Assembly: GCA_002269645.1 (NCBI GenBank)
Contig: NIVC01001483.1
Span: 62,001 to 126,000, forward strand
Origin: Macrostomum lignano
Lineage: Eukaryota
Direction: 5' to 3'
Length of the DNA: 64,000 nt
Position 1 is the stretch's first letter. Every line of letters starts with the position of its first letter. Both the position numbers and the translations under genes were made by a program. The notes beneath the pieces were generated by a model. The model saw nothing but the letters and a program-made list of their open reading frames with translations. It had not been told where the DNA came from and ran no database searches. Of this stretch, positions 14,775-64,000 are shown in pieces.

Positions 14775-14818
14775 ATTGTCGATCAGTTGCTACCTTTTAT
14801 TCGTGAAAACTTCTTTAT

Positions 14819-15972: not shown

Positions 15973-16006
15973 TGTAATATACTACACGTTTCGAGTGTAT
16001 GTGTGT

Positions 16007-19570: not shown

Positions 19571-19579
19571 GTCTCTTGT

Positions 19580-20784: not shown

Positions 20785-21294
20785 CAGGGCAGAGGGGTGG
20801 ACAGCTGCGATTTACTGGCTGACTGACTCATCATGCCTCCGCGCGGGGCCGCCAATTAATTGTGAGAGGCGACAGAATATTTTCTTGGATGGGTGGGCGC
20901 TACAATTCTGTGCGTACACGAAGTTTGGGTTTGATCGAACAGCTATGGGGTGGGCGGACGCTACAATTCTGCCAATTTTTGGTATATGGACAGTAAATAT
21001 GGACAGTTAATTCTGCGTACACCAATGCTGCATTGTGTGGGGATGGGGGTACGCGCGTTTCTGCGTACAACAACTGCGGAGCGCTAATTATGCGTACTAT
21101 ATTTTACTGGTCGCTTCTGTACACAGTGTACACTGATTACATGTATAGATTTTACATGAGAGTATAAATGTCTCACATAATGACTCTGGACCAATTAGTA
21201 ATCGGTCTAATGTATTTAGATAGGCGTTGAATTTGCATTGGCTCTGACACCCACCTCACCTCCAAAATCAACAACAATCTGCGCATTACGTAGT
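20785..21294. repeat. Right TIR of the Polinton-like element
   Basis: Inverted match to 11166-11785. Confidence 0.85.
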
Positions 21295-25187: not shown

Positions 25188-25429
25188 ATCCCAGTCCCTT
25201 AATCCTGGGATCCTGAACACTAACAAAAAGCCGGGATCCCAGGATCATTGGGACCCCTACTTAGCACCATCCAATCCTATAGCATAATATCCTACCACTA
25301 ATACCAAAAGCTATCCTAGGGCTCTCTATCTAATCTAGTGTCTAATCTTACTTATTTGCTACCACCAAGTTATTAAAAGGGCTTAATTCATATGCTCTCT
25401 TAGTTATTATACTTATTGCATATATATTG

Positions 25430-25930
25430 CAATAATCCTTGGTTTATCAAAGTGCAATAATCCTTGGCTTATCAAGTGCAATAATCGATGGCTTATCAAG
25501 TGCAATAATCCTTGGTTTATCAAGCGCAGTAATCTTTGGCTTATCAAGTGCAATAATCTTTGGTTTATCAAGTGCAGTAATCTTTGGCTTATCAAGTGCA
25601 ATAATCCTTGGTGTATCAAATGCAATAATCTTTGGCTTATCAAGTGCAATAATCCTTCGTTTATCAAGCGCAGTAATCTTTGGCTTATCAAGTGCAATAA
25701 TCTTTGGTTTATCAAGCGCAGTAATCTTTGGCTTATCAAGTGAAATAATCATTGGCTTATCAAGTGCAATAATCCTTGGTTTATCAAGTGCAAAAATCTT
25801 TACAGTAATCCTTGGTTTATCAAGTGCAATATTATTTGGTTTATCAGGCGCAGTAATTCTTGGTTTATCAAGTGCAAAATTCCTTGGCTTATCAAGTGCA
25901 GTAATCCTTGGTTTATCTAGCGCCATAATT
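25430..25930. repeat. 24-nt tandem repeat, ~20 copies
   Basis: Unit ATAATCCTTGGTTTATCAAGTGCA with variants. Confidence 0.9.
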
Positions 25931-25974
25931 TAGGTCTTTTTAATTAGTTTTTTAATAAAAGCTAATAAAAAGTA

Positions 25975-42770: not shown

Positions 42771-43224
42771 CTACCCCTAAGTTGCACCACTGTTACCCAA
42801 CAATCTACATGTCCTATTAAGAATGCTATAAATTTCTCTTTACTACTTTCTACACAATCACTTTCAATTTAGCTTTAGTCCTTACCAATTATATTCACTA
42901 TAGAACAAATTTAAGCAAGATAGCTATTATAAACATTATTATATTGATTAAAAACATACAATTTTGTGTTGGGCCTTGTCCCATTTTTACTTAGAAATTA
43001 GATGATAATGACTAATTTGTTTTTTTCTTATTTCTTTTCAGCTTTTAGCATTCAGTTTAATAAATAGTCATAATCATTGAGTATATATGCCTTAACTGGC
43101 CAATCGGCATAACAAGTTTAAGTGAGAAATTGGATTTAAGTTCAAGTTCGTGTTCAATTTTAGGAATAAGACGTTTGAACGAGCGAGGCCTGAGCACGAT
43201 CATCTAAAGAAAACAACGCGGAAA

Positions 43225-43499
43225 ATGAGCGAAACAGACGGTGCTAATGCAGGTGCTACTGCAAGTACAAACACTGACTCGAACTTTTTAGAATCCGCAG
43301 CAGCCGATGGTAACTTGGAAGTGGTACAGTATCTTGTCAAACTGATCAAAGTAGATAAAAGCGCGATGTGTCTGAGAGCAGCGAAACGCGCTGGCGACAA
43401 AGGTCATTTCAAAGTGATGAATTTTTTGCTGAAGGAAGTTCAAGAGCTACGTCAGGCGGATTATAGAGAAACAAATCCGGCTGGCCGCACTCGCTCGAG
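43225..43499 (+). CDS. Ankyrin-like exon
   Basis: AAADGNLEVVQYLV / AGDKGHFKVMNFLL; donor AG|GTGAGT; a possible phase-2 acceptor at 43163. Confidence 0.65.
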
Positions 43500-46400
43500 G
43501 TGAGTCACTGTTTGAATATGAGGTGTATAGCCGATGCAATAAATAATGTAGACTGTGAATTTGAATTTGTGACTTCCTTTGCGACGACTGTGACAGGTGA
43601 CAGCAAAACACTACATAATATATTTTCATCCCATTCAAATATCATGCCACCACAAAAATGAGCAGATAGCCATTTCTACTGCCCATGGGGTCCATTCGAC
43701 TTGAATGAGCTGTCAGTAAACTGGTTTTGAAAATGCTGAACAAAAAAAACTTTGAAAATTGAACATGAAGCGAATAAAAATTCACCAAATCTTAGGTCGG
43801 GCAGCCACCTGTTTGATAACGACTGGAACAAAATCCGCACTCTTGGCCGAGGTGCCTCTGGTACCGTTCACGAGGTGCTGACCGACATTGGCATCAGATG
43901 TGCTACAAAAACTATTGCACTGCCAATGCAGCTCAGTGGTGTGGCAGCCGAAGTGCGTAAAAAAATTGACAAATGTCTCGAGGCCGAGAAAAACCTGTGC
44001 GAACTGCAGCATGACAACATTGTCAAATATCTGTACATTTATCAGCCAGAGCGAGAGCCAGCCACAGTTGTCTTGTTCATGGAGCTTCTTGATGGCTGCT
44101 CCTTGGATAAATTTATTGCTAAGTCATCGAAACTGGATGAAGAGACCATCGGGCTGTTCAGCACACAGGTCAGACCGTTATCCTATAATTTTATAATACT
44201 GTAAGCAAATAATGTTAACGACTCATTGGCATGCAGCCGCTCACTTTCTGAACCATTTCTCAGATCTGCAGCGCTCTGGCTTACATTCACAGCCAAGAGC
44301 CAGCCGTGATCCACAGAGACATCAACTGTAGAAATATTGTTGTTCTCGCTGACAAAAAGCGAATCAAACTGGTTGATTTTGGCCTCTCAATCAAGCTTGA
44401 GCTTGATCCGGAACCCAAAGGCACTATGCCATTCATGGCACCAGAGCTGCTGGGGGGTAAAGATGATTCGAGCAATCCACACTACAGCAAATCGTCGGAC
44501 ATTTGGGCGTTCGGCTGCTCAGTCTACCAGATGGCCTCGGGCAAGCTGCCCTTTTCCGACTGCCGAAAACACAAAATCCCCGAGCTGCTGCATGAGAACG
44601 GCGCCCCGAGACTCCCGGATGGCTGCTCAGCAGAGCTGCGAGATTTCTACGACTGCTGCACCGCTCGAGAGCCAAAGGACAGGAAGTCGGCGGGGGACCT
44701 GCTTGGGCACGAGTTTCTGGCTCCTTTTGAAAGGTAAATAAAAAAATCCATAATACGCTCGTACTTGTAGCATCGAGTACCGTATTATTTTTGGAGACAA
44801 ATGGAGATTTTAGAAAAATTCACCATAAAAGACGTAACACAACTGCCCTGAGGCTCTATATTGGTATTTTAGGTTTAATACTTGATACTCCTTGGTGCAC
44901 GAGTTGTTAACTTCCCTTAAATAGAAAATTTTTATATTTTTTATTTTCTTTTTTTTGCTTTATTTCGAGTTAGTTTGCCTCACAGATACTAGAACACTGT
45001 AGAACTTGTTCTAGTATCTGTGGTTTGCCTTAAGCTCGTACAATATAAGTCAGCAATCTCGGCGTGCATTTAACCATAACTTTAATGAATCCCTTTATAG
45101 CCTACCATTCCTGGCGCGTTGGGATTCAGTTCGTCTTATTGGCAGAGGTGGCTTTGGCGAAGTGCACGAAGTACTGACAGACAAGGGAATCAGATGCGCA
45201 ACAAAGACGCTAAGAATTCCAGTACAGCTACTAGATGATCCGCTGGTCTCAGTGCAGGGAATATTACAAAGAGATATTCAAGCCGAAAGAAACCTCTGCC
45301 AACTCCGTCACCCAAACATTGTTAAGTTTTTGCATATGACACAGCCAGAACCAGCAACTTTTGTTGTCTTCATGGAGCTTCTGGACGGCGACACTTTAGT
45401 GAAATTTATCGATGGCAAGCCGCTGGACGAAGGAACAATTCGGGATTTCAGCAAGCAGGCAAGACTTTCACCCATGACATTTTCTTGTTCAACGTAGTAA
45501 TATTATTGCCAACTATTATACTATATCCTATTCTTTTCTTTCCACGCAATCCACCCTTTGTCCTGTTCTGCACCACCCACCTGTGCCATCTAGCCATCCC
45601 TCTCTACAATGCTGCGGCATTTATTGTAGCCGTTTCTATCATTTCTGTTATTGAAAGCTGGCCTAAATTTTTAATCATTCTCTAGTTTTCACCAATTGAT
45701 CAACTGCTATTATTAATGTGGTCCTGGTTTTTCAATTGCATGCAGTCTTTTAACCCTCCAAAATCTTTTTCATTTTTCAGATCTGCAGTGCGCTTTTCTA
45801 TATGCACAGCCGACAACCACCCGTGATCCACAGAGATATCAACAGCTCCAACATTATTGTGCTTAAAGGCAATAAGTCAATCAAACTGATTGATTTCGGT
45901 CTGTCAATCAAACTAGAGCAGTCAGTAACCCACTTGTCTACCATCAGTATTACACCTAAAGGCACCTTAAATTTCCTGGCGCCAGAGCTGATTGGATTAG
46001 GTGAATCAGACAGCGTGCAATACAGCAGAGAGTCCGACATCTGGGCATTCGGCTGCTCTGTTTTTCATATGGCCTCCGGTGAAAGGCCTCATGCGAGATC
46101 GACCAGCATCATTAACCTGGCTATGCTAATTGATAGAATGGGAGCCCCAGCCCTGCCAAGTGGCTGCCCTTCTGAACTAATTGATTTCTACAGATGCTGT
46201 ACCTTTAAGGATCGAAAACAGCGAAGTTCCGCTGAGGAACTGATGGAACACGGTTTTTTAACTAACCATATTCAGTAAGTGATAAATTTTACGAATAATT
46301 GTTATGTTTTCTTTTACACCGAAGAAAGACGGAAGATAGTGTTTGAGCGTTTGCGAGCTTATGCCACTCGAGAGCATAGCCGTTTCAGAATCTTAATATA

Positions 46401-49400
46401 TTTCTTTGGCTCGCGAGCCGTCTCAAGCATTTAATACTGTACCGAGTATCTAGAGTTTCAACCCTAGACACTTTAGAAGCAGAAAGCAAACGAGGCCGAA
46501 GTCTATAAGAAGTCAGAAGTCACGTCACAACATCCCTCTTCCTTTCAATCTTGAGCCTGATACCTCTCCGGCGGTCTTCGCGTTCGCTGAGGGTATCTGC
46601 GATCCGCCATCGGTTGATCCTCAGCACTTGGAGGTTCTCTCACTGGCTCATTCGTTGCCTCGGCTCTGTCCCTGACATGGTCACGGTGCACGACCAGATC
46701 TCGTCCTTGCTCGTCCCGCACTCGTCTCAACTGTTCGCCGACAGCTTCGCGCAGCACTTCCACTCCTTGTTAAACGGATCCTGGACCCAGACTGGGCTGT
46801 AGGCTTGGTCAATCCGCTTGTCTTGAAAGGACCGACGGTGCAGCAGTGAGAGTCTCGTGTTGAACTCGCGCCCAAACATTTCTCGGCACGGCGCGACTCC
46901 GTTGGCTCTTGGACAGACTCGCACCGCGTACAAAGCCTGTTGCATCCGAACCTCCGGATCTGAATCATTCAGCTGCTTCAGCTTGGTCTTCAGCTTTTTC
47001 ACTGCAGCCTCTGCTACGCCATTTGATGCGGGGTGGTAGCGGGGAGACTTCAGGTGTAACACTCCCATCCGCTTCAGCCAGGCCTCCGTCTCATGCGCCA
47101 CAAACTGTCGTCCGTTGTCAGTGACTAGTACATCTGGGATGCCAAAGTTGCAAAATGTTCTGCGGAATACTCTGATGACCGACGTTGCATCGATTTCGCG
47201 CACCCATTCGGCAGCGATGAATCCCGTCTTGGCGTCTGAAACCACCAGAAAGTTGCTTCCATCCAGTTGTCCCAGGTCAGCGTGCACTCGGCACCAAGCC
47301 TCCTTTGGTACTGGCCATGGTTTGAGCACCGATTTCTGGGATGGTCTCATGCGCTGGCACGTGTGGCATTCCGAAACGCACTTTTCTATCTCTGTCTCCA
47401 TTAGCGGCCACCAGACATACTGGCGGGCCCACGCCTTCATGGCTTGCATTCCGGGATGGGAACAGTGGAGAAATTGGATGACTTGCGCTCGGAACTTCAC
47501 CGGGATGACGATCCGATGGTCCAGTAGCAGTAGATGGTCGCTGCAATTCAGTCTGCACTGTACTCTTCTGTATGAGTCCGGCACGTCCTCACCAGATCGC
47601 AACCTCTGTAGAACGTCTTGGATCTCCTTGTCCTCCTTGGACGCCTGCTCCATCTGATCCTTCGTGACTGGTCCATCTTCTGACAGGGCGATGTCCACCG
47701 CAGCAACTTCGTTAACCGCTTCAGTCGCCGTTTTGTCGCTCCAGTTATTTCCGTCAGTTGGTAGTCTCGACAACGCGTCGGCATGAGGAATTTCGTGCGT
47801 TCTTTTGCCTCTGACTAGGTACTGGTACGTAGCCAGCAACTCAGCCCAGCGCTGAACTCTCTTACTTGCTCTCTCGGGCAGGTCTTTGTGTGATGCGAAT
47901 AAGAATTCTAGAGGCTTGTGATCGGTCACAATCACAAAACTCCGATAAGCTAGGAATCGATTTAGCTTCTTGACGCACCAGACCACTCCGAGGGCTTCTC
48001 GTTCTAGCTGGCTGTATCGCGACTCCGCAGGTGTGAGTTTCTTGGACACAAACGCTACAGGCCTTCCATTCTGCTCCAGCACTCCTCCAATGCCGTAGGG
48101 CGATGCATCTGTAGTCAGAGTTAGCTCCTTACTTGGATCGTACGGCGCTAGCACCTGCCTTGATGTAATGTCCTGCTTCAATTGCATCACGGCCTTCGTG
48201 TGTTCTTGTTGCCATGTCCAGCTGACATCTTTCTTCAGCAAGTTATACAGAATGGCAGTCTTCGTGGCCACTTGCGGGATGAACGGCGCATAGAAATTTA
48301 TCAGTCCCAGAAATGTTCTCAGCTCTTCCTGGTTTCTTGGATCTTCCATGCTTTGTATTGCCGTCACCTTATCCTCGTTCATGCAGCATCCCTCCTTTGA
48401 GATCTTAAGGGCTAGAAACTCGACCTCTTCCTTGTCGAACTGGCACTTCTTAGCATTCAGTGTGATGTCATTCTCTTGCAGCCTTTTAAGTATTATTTCC
48501 GTCTTCTCGGCTAAATTTTCCCGGTTTTTTCCACAGACTAGAATGTCGTCAATAAACACCACCACTCCGAGGACATCCCGAAGCAACTCGCATAGTGTGT
48601 TCTGAAACAATCCAGGAGCAGATGACAGTCCGTATGGTAATACCCTGTACCGAAAGTAACCAAAAGGTGTTGCGATAGTAGTGATATCCCGTGAGTCCTC
48701 GCACAGCTCCAGGTTATGGTATGCATCCTTCAAATCTAGCACAGTGAAACGGCTGCATCCTGAGATGGCTCGTTGCACGTCCGCCTTTGTTGGCATATCG
48801 ATTGGCGGTAGCCGTAAAAACTGGTTGACCCGTCTATAGTCTCCACACAGCCTGATGTCTCCCGAGCTTTTGGGAACGACCACAATCGGACTAGCGAACA
48901 CCGGCTGTTCTACTTTTTCAATTATCTTCCGCTTTTCCAGATCTTCTAATCTTTCCTTAACGGCTGGTACCAGCGAAAATGGGAGTGGTCGGGCCTTCGA
49001 TACCACCGGTCTCGTGTTTTCTCGTACTTCCAACTTTACTTGAATTCGCTTATAAGCCACTGAAGCTTGACAACGGCGTTTGGTAATTTCGATACCCAAA
49101 CTACTAAACCAATTTCGGCCAATAACCGGCTTTGCGTTCATGTCCATGACTACCACAGGTAATGAGCACTTACTTTCATCTTCGGTCTGAACTCGAACAT
49201 CTGCGGTACCACATACTGGTAGGTCTTGTCTTCCGTATGATGTTAGTCGACAATTTGGGTCTGTCCAATGCAGTCCTAGTTGTTCAGCCAAAATCTTAAA
49301 AATGCAGGTCACTGATGCACCAGAGTCCACCATCATAGCAACATCCTTATCGTTCAGTTTTACATTGATCCAGACGCTTGATCTGTCCCGGTCATCGCAT

Positions 49401-52400
49401 AGGCTAAAAAGCTCATTGTCCTTGGCTGGTTCATCCTCCTCCTCGATTCCTGCACACTCTCGCATTGACAACTTTCCTTTAATGGAGCCAGATGCCATCC
49501 TTCCATGTGAGCTAGCTTGCTTGTTAAGCTTACATGCAGCTTCAAAATGGTTCATTTTCCCACATTTTCGAAATTTTGCTCCAAACGCAGGGCATGCCTT
49601 TGGCGGGTGCCTCTTCATACAGAAATTGCAAGCCTTGCTGAATGTGCGTCCTTGAGCTTGGGCCCTGTTTTGTTGTCGTACTTTGCCCTTAGTCGCACTG
49701 ACTGTTTCCACCTTTCCATTAGCGCTTAAGGCACTCTTGCTTACTTGCTCTTGCGCCGTGGCAGTCTCCACCGCCAGCTCCAGGGTCAGCGGGTCTTTGA
49801 TAAGCAGCTCTTTCACCACTGACTCACTGCGCAGTCCTGCCACGAATCTGTCTCGCAAAGCTTCTTGTAGGAAATCTCCGAATTGACATCGGTCTGCTTG
49901 AGCACGTAACCTGTTCTCAAAATCTGCCGCTGATTCGTATTCATCTTGCTTCAGTAAGTTAAACTTGTAGCGCTCAGCTACAACCAGTTTCTTCTGCGGC
50001 ACGACATGCTTCTCAATTTCATCCTTCAATTCCTTGAAGGTCTTGTTCTCTGGCTTCGCCGGAGCGACCAGGTTCCGCAGCTTGTCGTAGGCAGTTTCCC
50101 CCATGAGGCTTATGAAGAAGTCGGTCTTGGGCGAAAACCCTTCCTCCTTCTCATCCTTCACGCCGGATCTCCTGCAGACGGCTTCAAACCGCTCGATCCA
50201 GACCTCGAATTTGTCCTCTGTCCAGGGAAGCTCCCGCAGGTTCTCTCGAGACAGCGACGCCGTTGTTATGTTTTCTTTTACACCGAAGAAAGACGGAAGA
50301 TAGTGTTTGAGCGTTTGCGAGCTTATGCCACTCGAGAGCATAGCCGTTTCAGAATCTTAATATATTTCTTTGGCTCGCGAGCCGTCTCAAGCATTTAATA
50401 CTGTACCGAGTATCTAGAGTTTCAACCCTAGACACTTTAGAAGCAGAAAGCAAACGAGGCCGAAGTCTATAAGAAGTCAGAAGTCACGTCACAACACGTC
50501 ACGTTATTTACATTCATTGATTGTATGCCGGCATTGGTTTATTTGCTTGTTAAAACTGCTTTAAATATGATGGCTTATGGCTCAATATTTTTAGAGTAGG
50601 TGACGAATTAGAATTCACACAGGCCACTTGTGCTGTCAATTAATGAAAAACTAAATAATTTGTTGGAGCTCTAGTACCATTGAATGTAGCGGAAACAAAA
50701 AAGATATACGAAAACAAAAACTTGGAGTGGAGGTTATGTATTTGTGCAATGAACAAGCCAATAAGGGGGTAGGAAGGCAAGTACATTCGTAAGCCGTAAG
50801 CCTCTGCTACTTTCTGGTCTATTTACAAAGCTAGTTGGTATTTGGATGCTGAGCGTCATAAGCCTGGCGTTTGAGCGTCAATCAAATACCTGCAGCAGTT
50901 TTCAAAGATATATGTTGCAAAGTGCCATTCAGCCTACTTGATTTTTTACGATGAGAGTAGCTAGGGTAGAATCACGCTAGGGCGTGATTTAACACACTGT
51001 TTATATTCTGTGGGCTGAGAACGACGTTAAAAGGAAATTGAAAAAAACATCCTTTTAGCTGTTTTTGTTTTTCCTCCGCGGAATTTCCTCTGTGAAATCT
51101 TCCCTGTGGAATTCTCAGTAAAATCCCTTAGTTTTAAATCCCATTCAGCATAGTCCAAATGTACTTTGCAATGAAATGCAATGCAATGAAAGCAACAAAA
51201 TTCCACGTAATTGAGCCCTCTTCTCTCAGCACTATTCCCTTCAGGATCATTCCCCATCAGCGTAATTGCCCCTTCGCATCATTCCCCACTCAGCATCATT
51301 TCCTCTTAGCAGCATCCCCTATTAGCACAATTCAGTGGCCATTCACATAATTCCCACAGAGTATTCCAAGTCCAGCTCACTTTAATATCAGTGATTCATG
51401 CAAGATAATTTAATAATTAACGAAAGCTTTTTGTTTAACTTATGTAGGAATCGTATTCTGGTGGCTGCCGAAAATGGTGAATTCGATGTGGTAAGGAATT
51501 TGGTGCAGACAGTCACTAATCAAACAGAAAGAGATGAGTGCTGCATCAAGGCTGCCAAATGTGCTGCAAGCAATGGTCAGTTGAAAGTCGTCAAGTTCTT
51601 CATCTCGTGTCTCTCAAGTCCGGATCGGAGAGTGAATCTCCGTTTCCAATGCGCAGTCGCGGCTTGCTCTCGTCTTCACGAAGATGTCGTTGTCTTCCTC
51701 GGCCTCGAGCCCGACTGGCTCTTCCAATCCAGCACCATCCTCAGCTTCACTGCAGCAATGGCCATCGAAGGCAGCAACTCCGTTCTCACCGACACCCTCT
51801 CTCGAATGCAGCCAGCTCGCATCACACAGCTGCTCCGTCTCTCCATCTCACAAAGACACGTCGCTCTTGCTGTCACACTGATCAATGATGAGCGAGTCAG
51901 CACAGAGCATGTCGATCGGCCAGACAGCACAGGAGCCACTGCTCTCATGCTGGCAGCTGATGCAGGTCATCACGAACTCATTGAGAAACTCATCGATCTC
52001 GGTGCGTCAGTGCGTGCTGAAGACAGTCAGGGTCGGACTGCTCTGTCACGAGCGTGCGAAGCCGGTCACGTGCGAGCAGTCAGGGCTCTGATGGACAGAG
52101 GAGCGGATGCGAGTCATCGAGACGGTCGGGGTCTGTCGTGTGTGCAGGTGGCACAGCTATTCAAGCAGCGGCAGGTGCTGAGGCTGCTGGATCGCAGTGG
52201 AGCGAGGTGAGTGAGGCAATAATTTTTCATCCACTTTAGAATGAATGCGTGAAGTTCAAAACACTTCAGCCGTTAATTTTTATGTAAAAACTTAGATAAA
52301 GCGTCTCCGATACACCAAATGATTTTTTTATTCACGCATTGCAGAAGCCCAGAGGCCCGGCAGGCATCCACTCATCGCTTGGATTGGGGCCTCCATCGGT

Positions 52401-55400
52401 GAGTCTGACCGGTTCAGCTTTTGCTGCCGCATTGCGCCTTCCAACAGGCTGCATGGCAGCTTGGGGCAGAAATTGCGGCGAAACTCAGCAAGGTTGAGAT
52501 TGGGTTGGACTGAGCGCTGCAGCAGCTGCACTCTCAACTCTCCTGCTTTTTCTGTCCGAGCAAATCACCCACACGCATCTCGGATCATTCCAGGTTCTCA
52601 GACGACTCTCAGCAAGACAGGTTCCTGAGCGAGGAGCTGCATCGACTGCTCAGCAATGCGGGATTCACCGAGCAGAGAGCAAGGTGTCAGCAGAGACTGG
52701 CTGACTGGCTGCAAGGAGTCGCTGGAGTTCTCACACAGGATGGCAATCGCAGGCAGATGACGGGCAGCTACGCAGAGGGCTGGGCCAACAATCTGGTGCA
52801 AGTGAACGGCAGGACAGCTGCAGACTCGGATATTGACTGGACTGTGCTGGTTGCTGGGCAGCAGTTCCATCTGGCAGGTGGCTGCGACAGACATTGGGAA
52901 CCATGCAGAGACGCCATTCTGCTGCAGGTTAAGGAAGGCCATGCACAGGTGGCAGTGGGAGCAGGTGAGTGAGGCTGGGTTCATCATCAGAATGACATAT
53001 TCTGTGGAATGCGCTGAAATCCATCGATTTCCTACTTTTTTTGCATTCCTATCATCAAGCTAGTACTAGTAGTGCAAGCCAAAAGCTTGATACTGAGAAA
53101 TAGTCTGCGAATTTTTTCGCTCTATTGTTTTTTTCATCTTCAAGCGAAACAATAAAAACCCACATCTTTATAGACAGTGTTTTTATTATTTATTTTAATT
53201 TGTTTTCCTATTTAAATACTTTTTCTGTTTTTAGTTCGTGTTAGGTACTAGACACTCAAATATTCGCTGAGAAGCCGGTAATTTTATATCCAGTGCTTTT
53301 AACTGGCCCTTAAGCGACTCAGAAATAATATTTATCCTATATAATCAGGAGAATATCAGCAGTTTGAAACCCATTCATCTGCTCTGCAGGCAGCCAACCT
53401 GCAGTGACAGCCACGGCGTGCGGTGTGCGGCCTGCACAGGACACGTGCCATGCGATCGAGTGCTGCAGCAGTTTCTGTGAGGACAGAGTTAGAAAACTGC
53501 TTGGACACAGCTTCAATAAAGTTCACCTCATTCGGGCGACCAGACCGAGCTCGACCAACGAGCTCAGAGTGAGCTTCAGCTTCCAAGAGAAACACATCAT
53601 GAGAGACCTGAGCACAGTCCAGGGCCAGCTGTTCACACTCATCAAGTTCATCTTCAAGAGACACTTGCCGCTCACTCTGGACACACCTGGACTCAAGACC
53701 TACCATGCAAAGACTCTGCTCTTCACAATGCTGGAGAAGCATGGCGCAGATCCTAAAACTAAGGCTTGGCAGCCCCACAATCTGATCGCTCTGCTCAAGG
53801 AGTCTCTCGACATGATGCTGAGCTTCATCGACTCAAGCAGCTCGCCCGATGAGTGCATGCCGCACTTCTTCATTCCCGACGCTCCGCTCTACTTCAAGAA
53901 CGCTGGAATCGGCGGCGACTTCGACAACACGAAGGCGAGGGTTCGAGACCGACTTTGTGAGCTGAGAAGCGACATCGGCGGAGTGGTTGAGCAGCTGAGG
54001 AGACTCGTGAGACCTCTGCAGTCAGTGAAATTCTACTTTCACCCGTTCACTCTGCTGCCTCTGACAGCGCCGCCTGCTGTCACGGAGATCAGGAAACAAA
54101 GTGAATATCCAGAATTTTATTACAATTTCGCAGACGTGTACAGTGTGGTGCATCAGTGTGTGAGCGAGCTGCAGTCGGAATCGAGCGACAGAGACACCCT
54201 GATGAGGCAGCTCAGTCTCCTGCATAAGCTGCAATGGTGCAAGTGCGCCGCCCTGTGCATGACCGCCATGGCGCATTTGAAGTTCGGAGAATCTGAGAAG
54301 GCTGAGAGACTCGCGATGGAGCTGCAGAGACATCAGGTTGAGTCAGGGTTGAAGCCACAGGATATCCGAGACGAGAGTAATAAGATAAAACTGTCAGCAG
54401 ACTCAGACTGGGCGTGGAGGTTCTGCCTCCCCTGCGACTCTCCGCCTCGCTTCCCATTCCTTCCCGAGTTCACGCAGACTCTGTTCACAGCCAGACTGTC
54501 GCAGCTTCTCTCCTCCCACCTGTACGTGAACTTCCGCTGCCTGAGCTGGAGTCTCCAAGCTGAGCTGCTCCGCAATCGCGCACCTGCAATCGCATTCGAT
54601 CATTGGATTGAACAGCTGCTTGGAGACCCGGACTTGGAGGAGCTGCTCGCTCTGGCTCACTACAGCGACTGCCGCAAGCACGTGGAGCTCAGCCTGCAGC
54701 AGATGGAGATGATCGAGAAAGAGAGACGCGTAGCCATGGAGACGCAGGACGAGGAGAAGATCGGCTGGCTGAGGCAGAAGCTGGAGAGACTTAATGATGC
54801 AGAAGTTAGAGTAGCCAAAACACAAGCTGACGTCAATCTTCGACGAAACTCTGGCGAGTCACCTCTCTACATTGCATCTGAGCAGGAGATCCTGGAAGCC
54901 GTTATGTTCGAAAATGAAGCAAAAATTTCACGATACCTGCAGACGCCTTCTAACGTTGATAGGCTCCTCAGCATCAATGAGATTACTTTCTCACCGCTTC
55001 ACTTTGCGTGTGAAATGGGAAAAGAAAAAATTGTCGAAATGTTCGCTCTAGCACAAGCTGACGTCAATCTTCAAACAATCGATGGCTGCTCACCTCTCAA
55101 CATTGCATCAAGGATGGGTCACCACCAAGTTGTGAGCTCACTCATCAAAGCACAAGCTGACGTCAATCTTCAACGAAACGATGGCTCCTCACCTCTCTTC
55201 ATTGCATCATGGAAGGGTCACCACCAAGTTGTGAGCTTACTCATCAAAGCACAAGCTGACGTCAATCTTCAACGAAACACTGGCGAGTCACCTCTCCACA
55301 TTGCATCACATTTTGGTCACCACCAAGTTGTGAGCTCACTCATTAAAGCACAAGCTGACGTCAATCTTCAACGAAACACTGGCGAGTCACCTCTCTACAT

Positions 55401-58400
55401 TGCATCACATTTTGGTCACCACCAAGTTGTGAGCTCACTCATTAAAGCACAAGCTGACGTCAATCTTCAACGATACGATGGCTGCTCACCTCTCTACATT
55501 GCATCACAGAGGGGTCATCACCAAGTTGTGAGCTCACTAATCAAAGAACAAGCTGACGTCAATCGTCAACGAAACACTGGCGAGTCACCTCTCTACATTG
55601 CATCACATTTTGGTCACCACCAAGTTGTGAGCTCACTCATTAAAGCACAAGCTGACGTCAATCTTCAACGAAACACTGGCGAGTCACCTCTCTACATTGC
55701 ATCACATTTTGGTCACCACCAATTTGTGAGCTCACTCATTAAAGCACAAGCTGACGTCAATCTTCAACGAAACACTGGCGAGTCACCTCTCTACATTGCA
55801 TCACATTTTGGTCACCACCAAGTTGTGAGCTCACTCATTAAAGCACAAGCTGACGTCAATCTTCAACGATACGATGGCTGCTCACCTCTCTACATTGCAT
55901 CACAGAGGGGTCATCACCAAGTTGTGAGCTCACTAATCAAAGAACAAGCTGACGTCAATCGTCAACGAAACACTGGCGAGTCACCTCTCTACATTGCATC
56001 ACATTTTGGTCACCACCAAGTTGTGAGCTCACTCATTAAAGCACAAGCTGACGTCAATCTTCAACGAAACACTGGCGAGTCACCTCTCTACATTGCATCA
56101 CATTTTGGTCACCACCAAGTTGTGAGCTCACTCATTAAAGCACAAGCTGACGTCAATCTTCAACGATACGATGGCTGCTCACCTCTCTACATTGCATCAC
56201 AGAGGGGTCACCACCAAGTTGTGAGCTCACTCATCAAAGCAAAAGCTGACGTCAATCTTCAACAAGTCGATGGCTGCTCACCTCTCTACATTGCATCACA
56301 TTCTGGTCACCACCAAGTTGTGAGCTCACTCATTAAAGCACTAGCTGACGCGAATGGTGTACATATTGATAGTCAAGAAGTGGCTAAAAGTAAATTCGCT
56401 GTGAAAGAGCCAACGAAACAGTTAGATTTTGGGTAAGATTCATTTTTTAATTTTTTTTGTTCTAAATAACTTTTTCGAATAGTTTTTTACGGGTCCGATG
56501 AAGATAAGGTAATTGTGCAAGCAAGCGGTCGTGAGAGGCAGTGTTGGCAAACAGCATGCAAACAGCGGAAAGCGAGAGCTTGCTGAATTCTGAGTCAAGA
56601 TGGATTTAACATGGCTGATATCACAGGCTAGTATATCTGCTCACAGGGTTTATCCGTGACTCAGAAGTAAATGCAATGTGAATGTGGAGTTCAGGACCCC
56701 ATCTGCCGCCATCCCCATAATTGGCATCGTCAGCAAATCAGGTTTCTTTTTGATTTACTCGGACCGCTCAGACCCGTTCGACCAATAAAGTTGCCTCGTA
56801 AGCCTGCCACTCTACAGACGCTTTACCGGGCAGTCACGAAAATTGGACCATTTTCAGGAACAAACCATGCACATATTTTCTCTGGACACTGGGCTCACCC
56901 TATGGACTCACCACCGGCCTGACCCACCCCACCTCCCGCCTCCTCCACTCCACACACAGGTCTCTGAATCTAAAGTATCAAATCCTCATCGCTGAATCAA
57001 CTCTTTTCCCACCTGCCAACCATATCACAGACACTCTGCATGGACACTCTGTATGGGCAGTCATGGAAATTGCACACATTTTCTCTAAACTAAACTAAAC
57101 TAAACTAAACTAAAGAACTAATTAAAGGATCAACTGCCTGCAAAATGATCAGCAAAATCAATTCATGCACTGTACGGGAGAGCTTCCCTGTGCTACACAA
57201 ATTAGTCAATTAACCCGTGTAGACCTGCAAGTTTTTCACAAACAATTCACATTTTAGATGCAGTCCCAGCGACTCAGAGCTGAGCCATCAGCTGCACTCA
57301 GCACTGGAGCAGTCAGGCTTCACCGAATCCCGAGCCGCATTGCAGAGCGCGGCTGCCGATGTTTTGCAGCAGATTCTAAGAAGTCGACTGAACTACGATA
57401 ACTTTTTTGTCATTGGCAGCTACTCAGAAGGCTGGGGAAACAGCCTGACGACACTGGATGGCAGAACTGACTCCAATTCCGACATTGATGTGATGTGTTT
57501 GATTCCCGGTCGAGAATACCACCAGAGAGGCCTGTGCGAGTGCGATGGCGCTCCGGAGCAGCACGAGTTGGTGAACGGGCACATTCAGATTTCAGGATTC
57601 GGTGAGCTCTCTCTTGGGGAGTGAGATGGTGTTAGTTCTGTTAGTGATTTCTATAGATTCTGGTAGTGCAGGCATTCCCGTTTTGTGTCCCACCTGTGTA
57701 AATTATTACTGGGAAACTCATGGCATTGTGCGTAGCTACGAGCTCGCATAAAATCGCTAAAAAATATCTACGACCCAAACAAGAACCTGACTGTTTTCTT
57801 TCAGTCTGGATTGATTTTGTACACATGCATGTGCATTTGAAATTTATTTAACCTGCGGGGCTATACCCACAGAATGAAAGTCTGTATTGGCTAGCTATAC
57901 CCACAGAATGAAAGTCTGTATTGGCTAGCTATACCCACAGAATGAAAGTCTGTATTGGCTAGCTATACCCACAGAATGAAAGTCTGTATTGGCTAGCTAT
58001 ACCCACAGAATGAAAGTCTGTATTGGCTAGCTATACCCACAGAATGAAAGTCTGTATTGGCTAGCTATACCCACAGAATGAAAGTCTGTATTGGCTAGCT
58101 ATACCCACAGAATGAAAGTCTGTATTGGCTAGCTATACCCACAGAATGAAAGTCTGTATTGGCTAGCTATACCCACAGAATGAAAGTCTGTATTGGCTAG
58201 CTATACCCACAGAATGAAAGTCTGTATTGGCTAGCTATACCCACAGAATGAAAGTCTGTATTGGCTAGCTATACCCACAGAATGAAAGTCTGTATTGGCT
58301 AGCTATACCCACAGAATGAAAGTCTGTATTGGCTAGCTATACCCACAGAATGAAAGTCTGTATTGGCTAGCTATACCCACAGAATGAAAGTCTGTATTGG

Positions 58401-60121
58401 CTAGCTATACCCACAGAATGAAAGTCTGTATTGGCTAGCTATACCCACAGAATGAAAGTCTGTATTGGCTAGCTATACCCACAGAATGAAAGTCTGTATT
58501 GGCAACTTGCATTTATTATATGTATCTCATTGAGTAGTTCATATATGCTCGTAGTATAGGTATAACAATATTCGAATTTTCTTCTCTCACAATCATCAGT
58601 CCAAAGCATCAACTGCACAGACTCTAAGCTGCATATTGCCCAATCGGGAACCGAATCGTTTTTACAGCCTCCAACCCTGCTGCTGCGAGACCCGGATGCA
58701 CACTGAGGCCAGCGATGGACAATGTCTCCGCATGCCGTCTCTGCCGCTACCCGCCCATCGCGCCGCTGCTACCATACCGCGTCTCGAACATCCCTCATTC
58801 GGTGCTGGAGGCTCTCCGGAAGGTTCTCACCTCCGCCTCATCGCCCTGCCACGTGGTGCACGCAGCCTCTCCTGACCGAGGGGGCAAAGAGCTCCGCGTG
58901 AGCACCAGCTTCCTGGAGAACCGGATGCTGCGAAGTCTCTCTACCCTGCAAGGTCAACTGTTCGTCACACTCAAATACCTGGTCAAGAAGGTCATCTGTC
59001 ACAAGAATGGCTTCAATCAGCAAGGCTTGAAGTCCTACCACGTGAAAACCATCACCTTCCGAATGGTGAACGAGACGCCGGTCGAGCAGTGGAAGACGGA
59101 GAACCTCGTGAGTCTCACGAGACAGTCGCTGCAGATGCTGCTCGACTGTGTGGAGAAGAGCCGAGAGCAGGACAGACAAACACCTGACACACCTGACCGA
59201 TCTCGGGGTCGCATCATGAACCATTTCTTTCTCAGCGATGCGGCCATCTACCTCAAGGGTGCGGACAAGGAGAGAGCGGACCAGCATTTGGACGGCATCA
59301 TGAGCACACTGAGAACAGTAATCGATCGGCTGCCCCAACTGCTGCAGCAGTTCATCGGCAGTCTCAGACCTGTGAGCGACTCAGGCACATTCTACTTCCA
59401 CCCGTTCCAAATCCTGCCGGATCTGAGGCCGATGCCCCTCACGAAGTCCAGTACTCTCGAGTACTATCAGATCTACGACGTGGTGAGAGAGTGTCTGGTG
59501 CGTCTCTCTTGCAGTGACTGCAGCCAGCGATCTCAGGAGTCGCTCACAGAGCTGATTGCCAGACTGCCAGACTGCGCCCTCTCAGCACGGGAGGCTCTCA
59601 GAGCGCTGGCTTGCCTGAAGTTCGGCTACCGAGGAACTGCAGAGAGAGTCGTGAGCTTGTACTCAGGTCACTCGGTGAGCAGAGGCATCGCTTGGTCTCG
59701 TGAGAAGTCGGCGACTGAAGCGACTATGGAGTTCGTGATGCGGCATCTGAGCAGCCGCAACTCAGCGTGGAAGTTCTGCTTTGAGTTTGACCAGCGACCG
59801 AAACTCGAGTTCTTGACAAGAGCTCTGAGGGAGTGCTTTCCCCTCCGGTTGTCAAGCATATATGACCATTTATACATGAACTTTGATGCTCTGCTGTGGG
59901 CTCTGCGGCTCGAGCTGCGGACTGATGGAGAAGCGCGCACTCAGGACTGGATCCGGGATGTGGCTGAGAGAGAGGACTCGGATGAGCAGGAGCTGCTGGT
60001 TGCCGCTTTTTATTCTTCGAATCCAGAGCAGCTTCAGGAAATGATGAATAAGCTGAAGATGATGGGAGCATATTCTCTTGATTGGCTGAAGGCGGGAATT
60101 CAGGAAAAATGGTGCTTTTAA
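43225..60121 (+). CDS. Predicted 10-exon gene, copy B: ANK-like / kinase / kinase / ANK / cGLR / ANK array / cGLR (~2,646 aa)
   Basis: Exons 43225-43499, 43796-44168, 44264-44733, 45101-45458, 45781-46274, 51448-52206, 52594-52964, 53390-56432, 57258-57601 and 58668-60121 sum to 7,941 nt and join in frame. The 46274-51448 junction is the least certain. Confidence 0.6.
43796..44733 (+). CDS. Kinase domain 1 of copy B (two exons)
   Basis: GRGASG, CATK, AEKNL, HRD, DFG, APE; phase-0 intron 44169-44263. Confidence 0.9.
44981..45022. mobile_element. 42-bp hairpin micro-MITE with 8-bp TSD
   Basis: 16-bp arms CACAGATACTAGAACA / TGTTCTAGTATCTGTG; GTTTGCCT on both flanks. Confidence 0.75.
45101..46274 (+). 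CDS. Kinase domain 2 of copy B (two exons, GC-AG intron)
   Basis: GRGGFG, CATK, AERNL, HRD, DFG, APE; intron 45459-45780 begins CAG|GCAAG. Confidence 0.88.
46300..46532 (-). repeat. 3' LTR
   Basis: Direct repeat of 50264-50496. Confidence 0.93.
46533..46546 (-). promoter_or_regulatory. Polypurine tract
   Basis: Minus strand GAAAGGAAGAGGGA abuts the 3' LTR. Confidence 0.8.
46545..50341 (-). CDS. Gag-Pol polyprotein, with a frameshift near 46765 before the C-terminal tail
   Basis: Zn knuckle CNFCMKRHPPKAC, protease VDSGA, RT LDLKDAY/FIDD, RNase H TDAS, integrase HHCC + DL/TDNG/AE. The tail ...RYPQRTRRPPERY is in another frame. Confidence 0.9.
50264..50496 (-). repeat. 5' LTR
   Basis: Direct repeat of 46300-46532; followed by a PBS-like ACGGCGTCGC. 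Confidence 0.93.
51448..52206 (+). CDS. Ankyrin-repeat exon
   Basis: AAENGEFDVV, GATALMLAADAGH and GRTALSRACEAGH; acceptor TGTAG|G, donor AG|GTGAGT. Confidence 0.85.
52594..54790 (+). CDS. cGAS-like/Mab-21 nucleotidyltransferase domain 1 (two exons)
   Basis: GSYAEG...DSDID, ELRVSFSFQE and KTYHAKTLLF motifs; phase-1 intron 52965-53389. Confidence 0.8.
54820..56360 (+). repeat. Coding ankyrin array: 13 near-identical 99-nt units plus 1-2 degenerate units
   Basis: 33-aa unit RNTGESPLYIASHFGHHQVVSSLIKAQADVNLQ and variants. Confidence 0.95.
57258..60121 (+). CDS. cGAS-like/Mab-21 nucleotidyltransferase domain 2 (two exons)
   Basis: GSYSEG...NSDID, MDNVSA, ELRVSTSFLE and KSYHVKT motifs; phase-1 intron 57602-58667 at the same position as in domain 1. 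Confidence 0.8.
57860..58503. repeat. 34-nt tandem repeat, ~19 apparently identical copies, intronic
   Basis: Unit GCTATACCCACAGAATGAAAGTCTGTATTGGCTA; no spacers. Confidence 0.95.
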
Positions 60122-61214
60122 ATGGCTACTTGGCAGTGAAGAGCTTCAGAAAATGTTTATGCTCCAGATAAACAGTTCATTAAAATTTATTTGCAGACCT
60201 TTTTTGAATTAATTCTAATATATTTAAATTTCTAGCTTCGACCACGTTTTCCCGACGAGATTCTCTCGCCAAATATTTTTATCTACAATTAGTTTTTGCT
60301 CTATTATGATCACAAATGCATTCTAATATTAGTTGCTCATCTTCTAAGGTATATACTAAAATGAAAATGTCTGTGTAAATATGTATATTTCACGTTTACG
60401 CGCTTCCGTTTCGCAAATTTATAAATTGCGGGCATTTTTAACTTAATGGGTATTTTACTCAGTCAAACTATTTTAATGGTATATTGTTTAGCTAGTATGT
60501 AACTTAACAAAGCTAGCCTAGCCCAGCACAGATACCATTATTCCACTTATTTCACGGCAGTACAAAGATTAGGGGTGAATAGATTAATAAATGCGAAAAA
60601 AACAAACTTCATCCAGCAGCTGAATTCTTTATCTGGTCCTTGAAGTGAAAAAAGTTTACCTTTCCCTGAAACATACTCGTACGATGGTCAATAGACAGAA
60701 GAAAATATTATCGTTGAAAAATGCCTGTGTAACTTCAATTTGTAATTTACAATTGATGTGCCTTATACTAGATCTTTTAAGCTACATGTACAGGTAGCTT
60801 AGTAAATTGTTTAAATGCGCTTACAGTATGATAATGATGCAACTTCTAACGTTTCCGCTTTTGAATAGATCCACCTTCAGTTATCCTGTTTGCTTTGCAT
60901 CGCAGGGTAAAGTCTGCAAATTTTACTTTGAAATTACATTTTTCATTTCTCTCTTTAATTGTCAATTCTGTAACAATGAAGTGAACCTTTGTGTTCTCTA
61001 ACAGTTACTGATGGTACAGTGAATTTTATGTGCATCATTTGCTGCAAATTTGATTTGTATAATTGCTATATTTTGGTGAACTACGAGTATGAAAAAATAG
61101 ACAGTATGAATAAAAATTAACTATACTAAAAGCAACAAGTTCTGTACATGCGCTCTGTCTCTCTCTGTCTTGGTTTACCAAAGTCGCGAGACGTGTTGTG
61201 TGTTGCGTGTTGTG

Positions 61215-61640
61215 TGTGATTGGGGAATCTGAAGGCTGTTGTGTGTGATAGGGCAACCTGAAAGATGTGTGTGACTGGGGAATCTGAAGGCTATGGTGTG
61301 TGATTTGGGAATCTGAAGGCTGTGGTGTGTGATTGGGAATCTGAAGGCTGTTGTGTGTGATTTGGGAATCTGAAGGCTGTTGTGTGGGATTTGGGAATCT
61401 GAAGGCTGTTGTGTCTGATTTGGGAATCTGAAGGCTGTTGTGTGTGATTTGGGAATCTGAAGGCTGTTGTGTGGGATTTGGGAATCTGAAGGCTGTTGTG
61501 TGTGATTTGGGAATCTGAAGGCTGTTGTGTGTGAGTGGGGAATCTGAAGGCTGTGGTGTGTGATTGGAGAATCTGAAGGCTGTGGTGTGTGATTGGGGAA
61601 TCTGAAGGCTGTGGTGTGTGATTGGGGAATCTGAAGGCTC
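61215..61640. repeat. 28-29-nt tandem repeat, ~14 copies
   Basis: Unit GGGAATCTGAAGGCTGTTGTGTGTGATTT with variants. Confidence 0.9.
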
Positions 61641-63570
61641 TTATTTGTGTGGCGTACATGTATAATGCTGAAAATTTGAATAAATGGTTATTATTACTTT
61701 GTACATTCATCTCAACCTAGTTGTTTTGCAGCACAAATGTTGTGCCCGGGTGCACTTGCACCGATGAGCAATCTCTGGCTCTCGGTCAAGTGTGCCCGGC
61801 ACTGCACTCCCACCCCCCCGGCCGCGTGCCTGCGCCAACCCCCCATTCTGTCTGCGTCAACCCCCCTCCAGTTGCACCCACCCCACTGCCTGTTAGGCCA
61901 GCCGGCTTTGGCTGGCTGCGGCCCCAGTGCGCCCCCTCTCTCGCCCTGCGATTGGCTGGTGGTCCAGCCAATCGGTTTGTTTCCTCTCCCCTCCAATCGC
62001 GACCCCGACTTGTAACTTTTTCCTTGTTGGATAAGACGATCGTAATTTTGGCTAGCTGGGCCTGGGGTAGCGATACCCCAGGGCTTAAACCAGCTAGCAC
62101 AAATATAAATATATGCAGGAGCGGCAGTAGGGGAGGCATCTCTCTCTCGCTTTCCTTGGTTGAATTGTGCAAGTCACAGCCATAAGTCTATTACTGCAAT
62201 CTAGATACCTGTCTATTCTATAGACTGAAGAGAGAACATTGAGAGAAGCCACCCAGCTGCTGCCGCCACCGCTGTTATCCGGAGAAACAGAGTGAGTCGC
62301 GTGTCTTTCTTATTTGAGGGACTGGCGGGAATTAATCTGTGCAATAGGGACGGGCTGATTAAGTCTCCTGACGCGATCCCCCGCTCAGAGTCCGAAGTCA
62401 GTCCGGCCAGTTGACTGACGCCATCTTCGGCTCGTTCACTGTGATAGTCAGGGTAGTGATCCGGCCTGTAGCGCATCTGAAGTACAACACAAACAACATA
62501 TACTAAAACACTATGGAAGGGTGGCTTACTTGGTTATAATAATCCCGCAATCAGGACGTTTGTTTGAAGTTAGTTTCTGTTTAAATTAGGGGTCCATCCA
62601 GCAAGCACAAAGAATGAACAGATGGACCCAACAGTCAACGAGTAGCTAATAGTCGGTTTCAATGCTTATACGTGCCACGAGCCAAGAGAAAATGTTTTAA
62701 AATCGGATGACTACAGCTAAGAAAACTGCATGCTAATGCTTCTACAGCTAAGAATAATTTCTTTATTTGAATAATTTTCTTCCTAATTTAATTCAGAGAA
62801 TGTAGGACTAAGTATTCAATTTATAAACTGTTAGCGATAGATCAATAACGATTAGAATAAAAACTAGGGTAGCTACTCACCCCTGAGGAGCAAAGGTTAA
62901 AATTTCGCTGAGCCACATGTACAAAAACCACGTGATCAAATAGGAATATAAGATAGCAAACGCAAGGAAGGACGAAGGCACAACCTCACTACTCTCCCAG
63001 AGAAAAACACACGGGGAGAAAACAACGGGATAAAAGATAAGGCTTTCGACAACGCAGAGAATGCAGCGCCTGCCTTACTTGGTAACTGGCAGGAGGACAC
63101 TTGATGTCACAGGAGGGCCTTTGCAGCACCAGCTCAGCCCAAGCTCACTTAAGGATCCCAATCCTTAATAATAATAAGGAAGGTGCAGTTGGAGATCCTT
63201 GCCCTGAAGATACATGACCTGCAGACATTGCTGGGAATAACAACAGTCGTTGATGTTGATGTTTAAGAAGTCATCCGGAATTATATTTGAACTGAATGCT
63301 TCAATCATATTTAAATAAGTAGGCACCGTTAGGTAGGGCTTTGGCCTTGAATGGACTAAATAGTTTCACTCGTCCAATAAAGCGATTTATGACTTTTTTC
63401 ATTTAAAGGAATTACCAAAGGCTAACATATTTTTCCCCAGGAATCGGTTGCACCAGCGACCTTTTCCCCCAGGCAGTCAACAAGCAATCGCAGTTAAATC
63501 TTCATTTCCATCGATCGCATTGAGGGTTGGAATTGTGTCATTACCACTAGGCACCACTAGGCTTGAAGAC

Positions 63571-64000
63571 CATCGAGGCATCTGCCTTCAGTCCTGTGCA
63601 GCGAAACTGTTCAACCGGATGCTGCTTCCGCGGTTGCAGCCCGTGCTGGATCCGTACCTGCGCCCAGAGCAGAACGGGTTCCGGCCCCATCGCGGCACAG
63701 TGGCACAGATCCTGGCTCTTCGCCGAGTCATCGAGGAGGCGCGGATTCGTCAGTCGATCCTGATTCTAATCTTTATCGATTTCAAGAAGGCATTCGACTC
63801 GGTTGTCAGAGCCGTGCTTCCAATGGTGCTCCGCGCGTACAACGTGCCTGAGCAGCTGATCTCCGCCATCATGGCGATGTACCGTGATACGACAGCTGCT
63901 GTGACAACACCGGACGGCCTATCGGACTCCTTTGAGACATCCTCCGGAGTGCTTCAGGGAGATACGCTGGCGCCGTTCCTGTTCGTCCTGGTGCTTGACT
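63571..64000 (+). mobile_element. Non-LTR (LINE, RTE-like) reverse transcriptase fragment running off the window
   Basis: Manual translation gives RGICLQS..AKLFNRM..RL, EQNGFR, FIDFKKAFDSV and GVLQGDTLAPFLF. Confidence 0.85.

Follow-up and report, generated by a model that had tools for sequence, protein, structure and literature searches.

Exon cassettes that are flanked by introns of the same phase are the textbook basis of exon shuffling, and to our knowledge assembly from such cassettes has been shown so far mostly for extracellular modules of class 1-1 and for leucine-rich repeats (LRRs). Here we describe a gene cluster of the flatworm Macrostomum lignano that encodes ankyrin repeats (ANK), protein kinases and Mab21 domains of the cGAS-like receptor (cGLR) type in cassettes bounded by phase-2 introns. 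The analyzed window comprises 64,000 nucleotides (nt) of contig NIVC01001483.1 (assembly GCA_002269645.1, positions 62,001 to 126,000 of the forward strand). All positions are numbered within this window, and the region under study is located on the plus strand at 43–60 kb. The arrangement resembles the class 1-1 modules of metazoan extracellular proteins described by Patthy's rule in its one-phase flanks, in the possibility of insertion or duplication without a frameshift and in the occurrence of a module in several architectures. It differs in that the cassettes are of the 2-2 type, that the domains (kinase, ANK, Mab21 and caspase) are cytoplasmic, that an internal intron of another phase is present and that some joins are exonic.

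Phase-2 exon shuffling of LRR exons has been described for the ROCO and NB-ARC candidate immune receptors of brown algae and likewise for gonadotrophin receptors (PMC11378527). The algal receptors share with the present family the repeat exons bounded by phase-2 introns, a lineage-specific expansion and a proposed role in immune-receptor diversity. In both the algal and the gonadotrophin receptor cases, however, the shuffled units are individual repeat exons of 72 bp that belong to a single domain, whereas here we deal with catalytic cassettes of ~850 nt and short linker exons. Moreover, in contrast to the LRR systems, the ANK repeats expand inside an exon and not by exon duplication.

Ankyrin repeats and a Ser/Thr kinase are combined in one cytoplasmic protein, as here, in RIPK4/ANKK1, TNNI3K and ILK. 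The likeness is one of domain content; the kinases of the present family are nearest to the STE group (STK24, MAP3K2, TNIK) and occur in tandem copies. Animal cGLRs with added ANK or TPR repeats as well as multi-cGLR fusions have been reported by Li et al. (2023, PMC9980059), while most platyhelminths were reported to be without cGLRs beyond Mab21-like proteins (PMC9980059). Common to these cGLRs and the M. lignano proteins are the ankyrin repeats ahead of a Mab21/cGAS-like fold, and the protein with two cGLR domains resembles OAS2 and OAS3. In contrast to the described cGLRs, the domains found here, which are known from sequence and model, are very divergent (in Pfam, Mab-21_C is the only match, with scores of 25–27 bits) and carry a helical C-terminal extension of ~220 amino acids (aa). 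Furthermore, a kinase is part of the fusion in one M. lignano paralog and a caspase in another. In the literature on Macrostomum with cGLR or Mab-21 we found no paper on this family.

The plus-strand region contains, in this order, an N-terminal ankyrin-like exon (ANKn), two split kinase domains (K1 and K2), a further ANK exon (ANK2), a split Mab21 domain (cGLR1) running into an ANK array, and a second split Mab21 domain (cGLR2). Pfam identifies two protein kinase domains, ankyrin repeats and two Mab-21_C matches. With the introns inside the modules placed, ten exons form a single open frame of 2,646 codons, or 2,664 if a 54-nt mini exon is included, and the intron phases along the ten-exon chain are 2,0,2,0,2,2,1,2,1. 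The five module junctions listed in the first-pass annotation (43499/43796, 44733/45101, 46274/51448, 52206/52594 and 56432/57258) are all of the GT..AG type and all of phase 2. Its description of the introns inside the modules was also correct: all four kinase domains (two on the plus strand, two in an inverted paralog on the minus strand) have a phase-0 intron behind FSTQ or FSKQ, and a phase-1 intron is found at a homologous place in both Mab21 domains. The symmetric 2-2 modules have sizes of 843 nt (K1), 852 nt (K2), 54 nt (mini exon) and 3,414 nt (block of cGLR1 and ANK array). The ANK2 exon measures 759 nt and has phase 2 on both sides if it is counted from the unconfirmed acceptor 51448.

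Splice sites were scored with a position matrix built from 44 verified introns of paralogs, with percentiles taken relative to all GT or AG sites in 42–61 kb. GT donors of the window fall between the 96th and 99.9th percentile and acceptors between the 82nd and 99.9th; the matrix fails to separate the doubtful acceptor 51448 from the accepted ones. Some details of the proposed scheme had to be revised. A candidate phase-2 acceptor at 43163 corresponds to the AG at 43162–43163 and has phase 2 only with 43164 as the first base of the exon; the given position is thus off by one, and nothing supports its use. The junction 52206/52594 has the proposed phase but skips the mini exon (52345–52398), so it is probably not the main junction as written. 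This mini exon (TTGCAG/.../GTGAGT), which encodes SPEARQASTHRLDWGLH, has homologous counterparts in exon 2 of P0001, an RNA-guided paralog model, and in one exon of P0163. It has phase 2 on both sides, and the phase pattern therefore survives its inclusion. The statement that all modules are joined by phase-2 introns does not hold, since cGLR1 and the ANK array in the window as well as cGLR and kinase in P0001 are joined within one exon.

It had further been pointed out that retention of an intron with a phase-2 GTRA donor leads to an immediate stop. This is correct, but it follows automatically from phase 2 together with the usual GTRA donor and is not special. GTRA as a particular feature of phase-2 donors was rejected, its frequency being equal among the phases (18 of 22 phase-2, 6 of 7 phase-1 and 12 of 15 phase-0 introns).

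For a comparison of intron phases and domain orders, we mapped ten M. lignano paralog models exactly, in spliced form, onto their own contigs. The models were taken from the GenBank annotation of Mlig_3_7, whose source is a genome-guided transcriptome (PMC5730564), and the splice positions and phases of the window recur in them. In these models, every intron directly flanking a kinase or Mab21 cassette has phase 2, the kinase-internal introns have phase 0 after F-x-x-Q and the Mab21-internal introns have phase 1. Among the 44 introns there are 22 of phase 2, 15 of phase 0 and 7 of phase 1. Phase 2 is usually the rarest intron class. Four junction types of the window (ANKn to kinase, kinase to kinase, ANK2 to Mab21 and ANK array to Mab21) lie at positions that are used in RNA-guided paralog models. 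We conclude that cassettes bounded by same-phase introns are a real pattern beyond chance and that the family represents a phase-compatible cassette system.

The individual models illustrate this pattern. P0001 consists of an ANK exon, a 54-nt exon and the N-terminal Mab21 exon, connected by phase-2 introns, followed across a phase-1 intron by one exon for the C-terminal part of Mab21 and the kinase N-lobe and, across a phase-0 intron, by the kinase C-lobe. In P0127 and P0130 an ANK exon with the ATG is linked via phase 2 to the N-terminal Mab21 exon and this via phase 1 to the C-terminal one. P0163 has the same Mab21 pair behind an ANK exon and linker exons of 51 and 54 nt, all joined in phase 2. 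At its locus (L009, 8600–10000) the upstream ANK-type repeats are frameshifted and the Mab21 exon has a premature stop with homology continuing past it; this locus looks decaying. In P0002 and P0168 a 42-nt exon with phase 2 on both sides precedes a kinase N-lobe of 364 nt and, after a phase-0 intron, a C-lobe of 488 nt. The latter is followed via phase 2 by the next kinase in P0002, while P0168 ends with a stop in a 534-nt C-lobe exon. P0014 contains an 84-nt 2-2 exon, a kinase with its phase-0 intron and, across a phase-2 intron, a caspase exon. In P0006 an ANK exon is joined in phase 2 to a degenerate kinase with a phase-0 intron, and a further kinase, again split in phase 0, has a phase-2 intron ahead of it. 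The distant P0150 comprises an ANK exon, a 112-nt exon, the two Mab21 exons and a last exon with intron phases of 1, 2, 1 and 0. Linker mini exons thus occur in four lengths (42, 51, 54 and 84 nt), and each is of the 2-2 type.

According to the most likely assignment, the exons of the window belong to two genes. Gene A (43225–46278) encodes 657 aa with the order ANKn-K1-K2 and ends at a TAA. Its first exon (43225–43499) provides the ATG and the ankyrin-like N-terminal repeat and has the phase-2 donor GAG/GTGAGT; exon and donor are kept in the minus-strand paralog. K1 is built up from an N-lobe exon (43796–44168) with a phase-2 acceptor and a phase-0 donor after FSTQ, at a position homologous in P0002, P0014, P0006 and P0168, and a C-lobe exon (44264–44733) with the phase-2 donor AAG/GTAAAT. 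The type of junction between K1 and K2 also occurs in P0002. The N-lobe exon of K2 (45101–45458) has a phase-2 acceptor and the phase-0 GC donor CAG/GCAAGA after FSKQ. The minus-strand paralog has GTAAGT at the place equivalent to this GC-AG intron (45458/45459). In the C-lobe exon of K2 (45781–46278) the sequence CA/GTAAGT at 46274/46275 can be read as a phase-2 donor or, more likely, as containing the stop codon of gene A (TAA at 46276–46278).

Gene B (51398–60121) most likely encodes 2,024 aa with ANK2, the mini exon, cGLR1, the ANK array and cGLR2. Exon 1 (51398–52206) contains the ANK2-type repeats, probably starts at ATG 51398 and has a phase-2 donor (GAG/GTGAGT) homologous to the exon 1 donor of P0001. 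The N-terminal exon of cGLR1 (52594–52964) with the motif GSYAEGW...DSDID has a phase-2 acceptor and a phase-1 donor. The C-terminal part of cGLR1 and the ankyrin array share one exon (53390–56432) with an in-frame join at ~54802–54830 and the phase-2 donor TGG/GTAAGA. The N-terminal exon of cGLR2 (57258–57601) again has a phase-2 acceptor and a phase-1 donor; it contains no in-frame ATG ahead of the conserved core, and the junction from ANK to cGLR is homologous in P0127 and P0130. The C-terminal exon (58668–60121) runs to the stop codon. A tandem array of 18.9 copies of a 34-bp unit with 100% identity (57860–58503) is located in the intron of this second Mab21 domain. In the protein set, the window gene itself is matched only by P0132, an older gene prediction with 99% identity. 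P0132 shares the acceptor at 57258; it mis-frames the mini exon and omits the ANK array. The closest relatives in the databases are all M. lignano proteins.

The first-pass annotation had assumed a single long receptor gene, in which K2 is spliced to ANK2 via the junction 46274/51448. This splice is not supported by any related protein, and two genes are more likely. A search of a 5.8-billion protein set yielded no protein that spans the junction, and among the M. lignano proteins found in the same searches none carried an ANK2-type module behind a kinase. Most paralogs have their kinase at the C-terminus. The homology of ANK2 to the N-termini of stand-alone paralogs extends upstream of 51448 to ~51407, with ATG 51398 opening the frame, and a motif (F/L)C(K/R), located 11 residues ahead of the repeat glycine, is conserved in this upstream part. 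Acceptor 51448 would split a repeat unit midway. At the closest paralog loci, L001 and L009, no kinase was found within 8–10 kb upstream of the ANK exon. Because the junction 46274/51448 has no outside support and coding homology continues upstream of 51448 to ATG 51398, the region probably comprises two genes with the predicted architectures ANK-kinase-kinase (A) and ANK-cGLR1-ANKx13-cGLR2 (B).

A few observations weigh against this division. The homology upstream of 51448 covers only ~14 residues. The site at 46274 is a perfect GTAAGT, terminal stops are not donor-like in four of seven paralogs, and 46274 may function as a donor or have done so in the past. One giant gene would then produce a protein of ~2,664 aa (ANK-K-K-ANK-cGLR-ANK-cGLR) by splicing K2 over a 5.2-kb, retrotransposon-bearing intron to ANK2. 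The chain indeed stays in an open frame over all exons, donor 46274 (GTAAGT) scores at the 97.6th percentile and acceptor 51448 at the 88th, similar to accepted acceptors, and long multi-protein precursor transcripts exist in this species (PMC5730564). The intron would also have measured only ~975 nt before the insertion of a long terminal repeat (LTR) element. The missing kinase-to-ANK2 relative, the terminal position of the kinase, the start codon and coding homology ahead of 51448 and the bisected repeat unit all speak against the giant gene, however, and the 1.8 kb that follow K2 in the minus-strand paralog contain nothing ANK-like. We regard such a gene as unlikely and favor the two-gene arrangement.

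The inserted element is a young retrotransposon of the Ty3/gypsy type on the minus strand (46299–50496), which sits 25 nt after the end of the K2 exon. Its open reading frame (ORF, 46727–50341) is intact and encodes 1,204 aa with the order protease-RT-RNaseH-integrase. Since the two 234-nt LTRs (46299–46532 and 50263–50496) are 100% identical, the insertion is very recent. A target-site duplication is not evident at the ends of the element. Without the retrotransposon, the interval from 46274 to 51448 shrinks to the ~975 nt mentioned above.

The transition from cGLR1 to the ANK array lies inside exon 53390–56432 without any intron. The window, gene A of locus L001 and P0001 have a common Mab21 sequence up to ~54783 and then diverge: the window continues with the ANK array, L001 gene A with a 65-aa tail and a stop, and P0001 with the kinase. 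L009 tracks the window as far as 54802 and reaches a stop after 20 more codons. Beyond the join, the window sequence matches P0127 from the third residue of P0127. Because the paralogs diverge at ~54783–54802 and the window then matches P0127 from residue 3, gene B reads as an ANK-cGLR1 gene to which an entire ANK-cGLR2 gene was fused in frame within an exon. P0001 provides a second example of an exonic join, with Mab21 connected to the kinase without an intron. The ankyrin array itself (54951–56438) comprises ~13 copies of a 99-nt unit, each corresponding to one ANK repeat. It also shows a 396-nt higher-order period, in which identity reaches 94%, and is evidently a recent amplification inside an exon.

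The proposal that the family recombines its cassettes is supported by the reuse of the kinase cassette and by one intronic breakpoint, but the Mab21 fusions are exonic and ANK-cGLR dominates. Overall, the data support exon shuffling in part. With phase 2 on both sides, the kinase cassette is symmetric and measures 843–852 nt (364 plus 488 nt in most paralogs). Upstream, an intron separates it from an ANK exon, from a mini exon or from a further kinase, and in P0001 Mab21 precedes it with no intron in between; downstream, a kinase or caspase exon follows across an intron, or the cassette ends with a stop. Mab21 domains are found in combination with ANK, a kinase or a caspase and also in duplicate. 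The architectures observed include ANK-K, ANK-K-K, K-K-caspase-ANK, ANK-K-caspase, Ras-ANK-K, ANK-cGLR-K and ANK-cGLR-ANK-caspase. Long Mab21 matches with EGF/DSL or homeodomain parts were excluded from the architectures; they have the appearance of merged gene predictions. Introns mark the domain boundary for ANK to kinase, kinase to kinase, kinase to caspase and ANK to Mab21, and the boundaries are exonic for cGLR1 to ANK array and for cGLR to kinase in P0001. On the M. lignano contig L002 (20123–23602) three kinase cassettes are arranged in tandem with a period of 1,306 bp and 95% identity, whereas only two are present in the deposited model P0002. This model passes from one copy to another via an unusual GC..AG "intron", probably an artefact that arose when a transcript was mapped onto near-identical repeats.

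The intronic breakpoint was found in a recent, inverted duplication within the window. An inverted paralog of ANKn-K1-K2 on the minus strand (5072–1826) has the same splice sites and phases as the plus-strand copy. All of its splice sites are kept, although the donor at the end of K1 reads GTACAG and not GTRA. Its ANKn-K1 part (43100–44792 corresponding to 5072–3316 on the minus strand) has 90.8% DNA identity. The duplicated block ends at 44792, 59 nt into the intron between K1 and K2, and the attached K2 is only ~55% identical to the plus-strand K2. A "second copy" begins in intron 1, at 43587. The minus-strand K2 (2314–1829) has HRN in place of HRD and GFG in place of DFG and is probably a pseudokinase; the end of its ORF, CTGGT/GTGATT, can be read as a stop or as a phase-2 donor. 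A third, broken copy of the K1 N-lobe region is found on the minus strand within 10900–21764 (pieces 21764–21295 and 11165–10900) and is 92–94% identical to the plus-strand copy. The ~10-kb insertion that splits it contains several ORFs, one of them with an integrase core domain.

We propose the following mechanism for the assembly of these genes. Because every cassette is of the 2-2 type, its tandem duplication or its placement beside another cassette would keep the reading frame. Unequal crossing-over and duplications ending in the phase-2 introns could then have produced the K-K and K-K-K arrays and genes of the ANK-K-caspase type. Other joins would result from deletions that fused neighboring genes inside exons.

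Several points weigh against a large role of the introns in this process. Only one breakpoint was located in an intron; the L002 array begins and ends within exons, and exons also contain both joints of the Mab21 fusions. The ANK repeat number grows within an exon, and ANK-cGLR accounts for 54 of the 62 multi-module Mab21-bearing proteins. The 22 phase-2 introns among 44 are not independent events, as the paralogs share ancestry, and the distant P0150 has a phase-1 intron between its ANK exon and the 112-nt linker exon. Phase 2 could simply have been inherited from one ancestral gene, with the architectures arising by whole-gene duplication and exonic fusions and without any intron-mediated shuffling. 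The exonic Mab21 joints, the array boundaries of L002 and the strong dominance of ANK-cGLR are in line with this explanation. It does not account well, however, for an unrelated caspase exon linked to the kinase cassette through a phase-2 intron, for mini exons of four different lengths that are all 2-2, for the ANKn-K1 duplication that ends in an intron and carries a different K2, or for the constant size of the kinase cassette (364 plus 488 nt) across contexts. We regard an origin of the family without intron-mediated shuffling as unlikely, and a contribution of intron-mediated cassette assembly remains the preferred interpretation.

The window's own genes, known here from sequence, were absent from the Mlig_3_7 GenBank annotation in our protein database searches, which also counts against functional genes. 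The cluster could be a decaying, unexpressed set of duplicates whose open frame is young rather than functional. Besides the missing annotation, the fresh LTR insertion 25 nt from an exon, the broken kinase copies nearby, the frameshifted repeats and premature stop of the L009 paralog and the loss of catalytic residues in the minus-strand K2 would fit such a scenario. Genes A and B, however, extend over ~2,680 codons without a stop or frameshift, and all splice sites are intact. The plus-strand kinases keep the Gly-rich loop, Lys, HRD, DFG and APE, and both Mab21 domains keep GS and DxD. We therefore consider decay very unlikely. We think it rather probable that the window holds part of a lineage-specific cluster of multi-domain genes, composed of ANK, STE-like kinase and divergent Mab21 domains and, in paralogs, caspase.

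Since the cassettes share phase 2 and GTRA donors double as stop codons, tandem genes might also be joined optionally. Intergenic or alternative splicing could join or separate the genes of the cluster (A into B, mini exons in or out) and so give combinatorial isoforms of kinase, ANK and cGAS-like sensor modules. At present we regard this as a highly speculative option.

The plus-strand copies of K1 and K2 keep GRGxxG, ATK, HRD, DFG and APE, and the Pfam Pkinase matches have E-values of 1e-31 to 1e-33. The best relatives among solved kinase structures are STK24, MAP3K2 and TNIK. Judged by these features, the kinases look STE-like and the plus-strand copies catalytically intact. Bacterial-style ORF lists and matches to fungal and bacterial kinases were uninformative beyond placing the kinase group.

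The divergence of the Mab21 domains, which carry the ~220-aa helical extension at the C-terminus, is apparent from the low Mab-21_C scores and from an E-value of 0.05 for cGAS by sequence. We checked the fold on P0121, which is 89% identical to the cGLR2 of the window. Its AF2 model has a pLDDT of 88 and a pTM of 0.89, and a Foldseek search of the PDB gave cGAS, oyster Cv-cGLR1, MAB21L1 and MB21D2 as top hits (E ~1e-6, target TM-score 0.50–0.56). The model thus supports the presence of a Mab21/cGAS-type nucleotidyltransferase fold. Motifs of the catalytic type are GSYAEGW/DSDID in cGLR1 and GSYSEGW/NSDID in cGLR2; the third acidic residue was not located. Residues G49, S50 and D71 are nearly invariant across 22 relatives. 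The Mab21 family is narrow, with 178 representatives among 1.84 billion at E <= 0.001 and 72 at E <= 1e-30. By analogy with cGLRs, the proteins probably function in cytosolic sensing and signalling.

Downstream of the Mab21 gene, a 29-bp tandem repeat (61208–61639) was observed, and a ~88% identical repeat lies downstream of the paralogous Mab21 gene (L001 3564–5051, contig NIVC01001518.1). The duplication therefore extended beyond the genes. Two large satellite-like arrays are located at 25428–27574 (15 copies of 24 bp and 64 copies of 25 bp). An open frame on the plus strand (63364–63999), which continues past the window's end, encodes a reverse-transcriptase-like sequence (...FIDFKKAFDSV...) and probably belongs to a non-LTR retroelement.

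Taken as a whole, the locus is a new example of a known mechanism and a sound but incremental observation on gene structure. If the cassette picture is true genome-wide, M. lignano would be a clear animal case of cytoplasmic catalytic domains built from same-phase cassettes. It would also hold an expanded ANK-cGLR group in a flatworm, although most platyhelminths were reported to be without cGLRs (PMC9980059), and offer a candidate set of innate-immune genes in a tractable regeneration model. Should the combinatorial splicing outlined above take place, one locus would supply a set of sensor isoforms in a flatworm phylum that is thought to be mostly without cGLR signalling.

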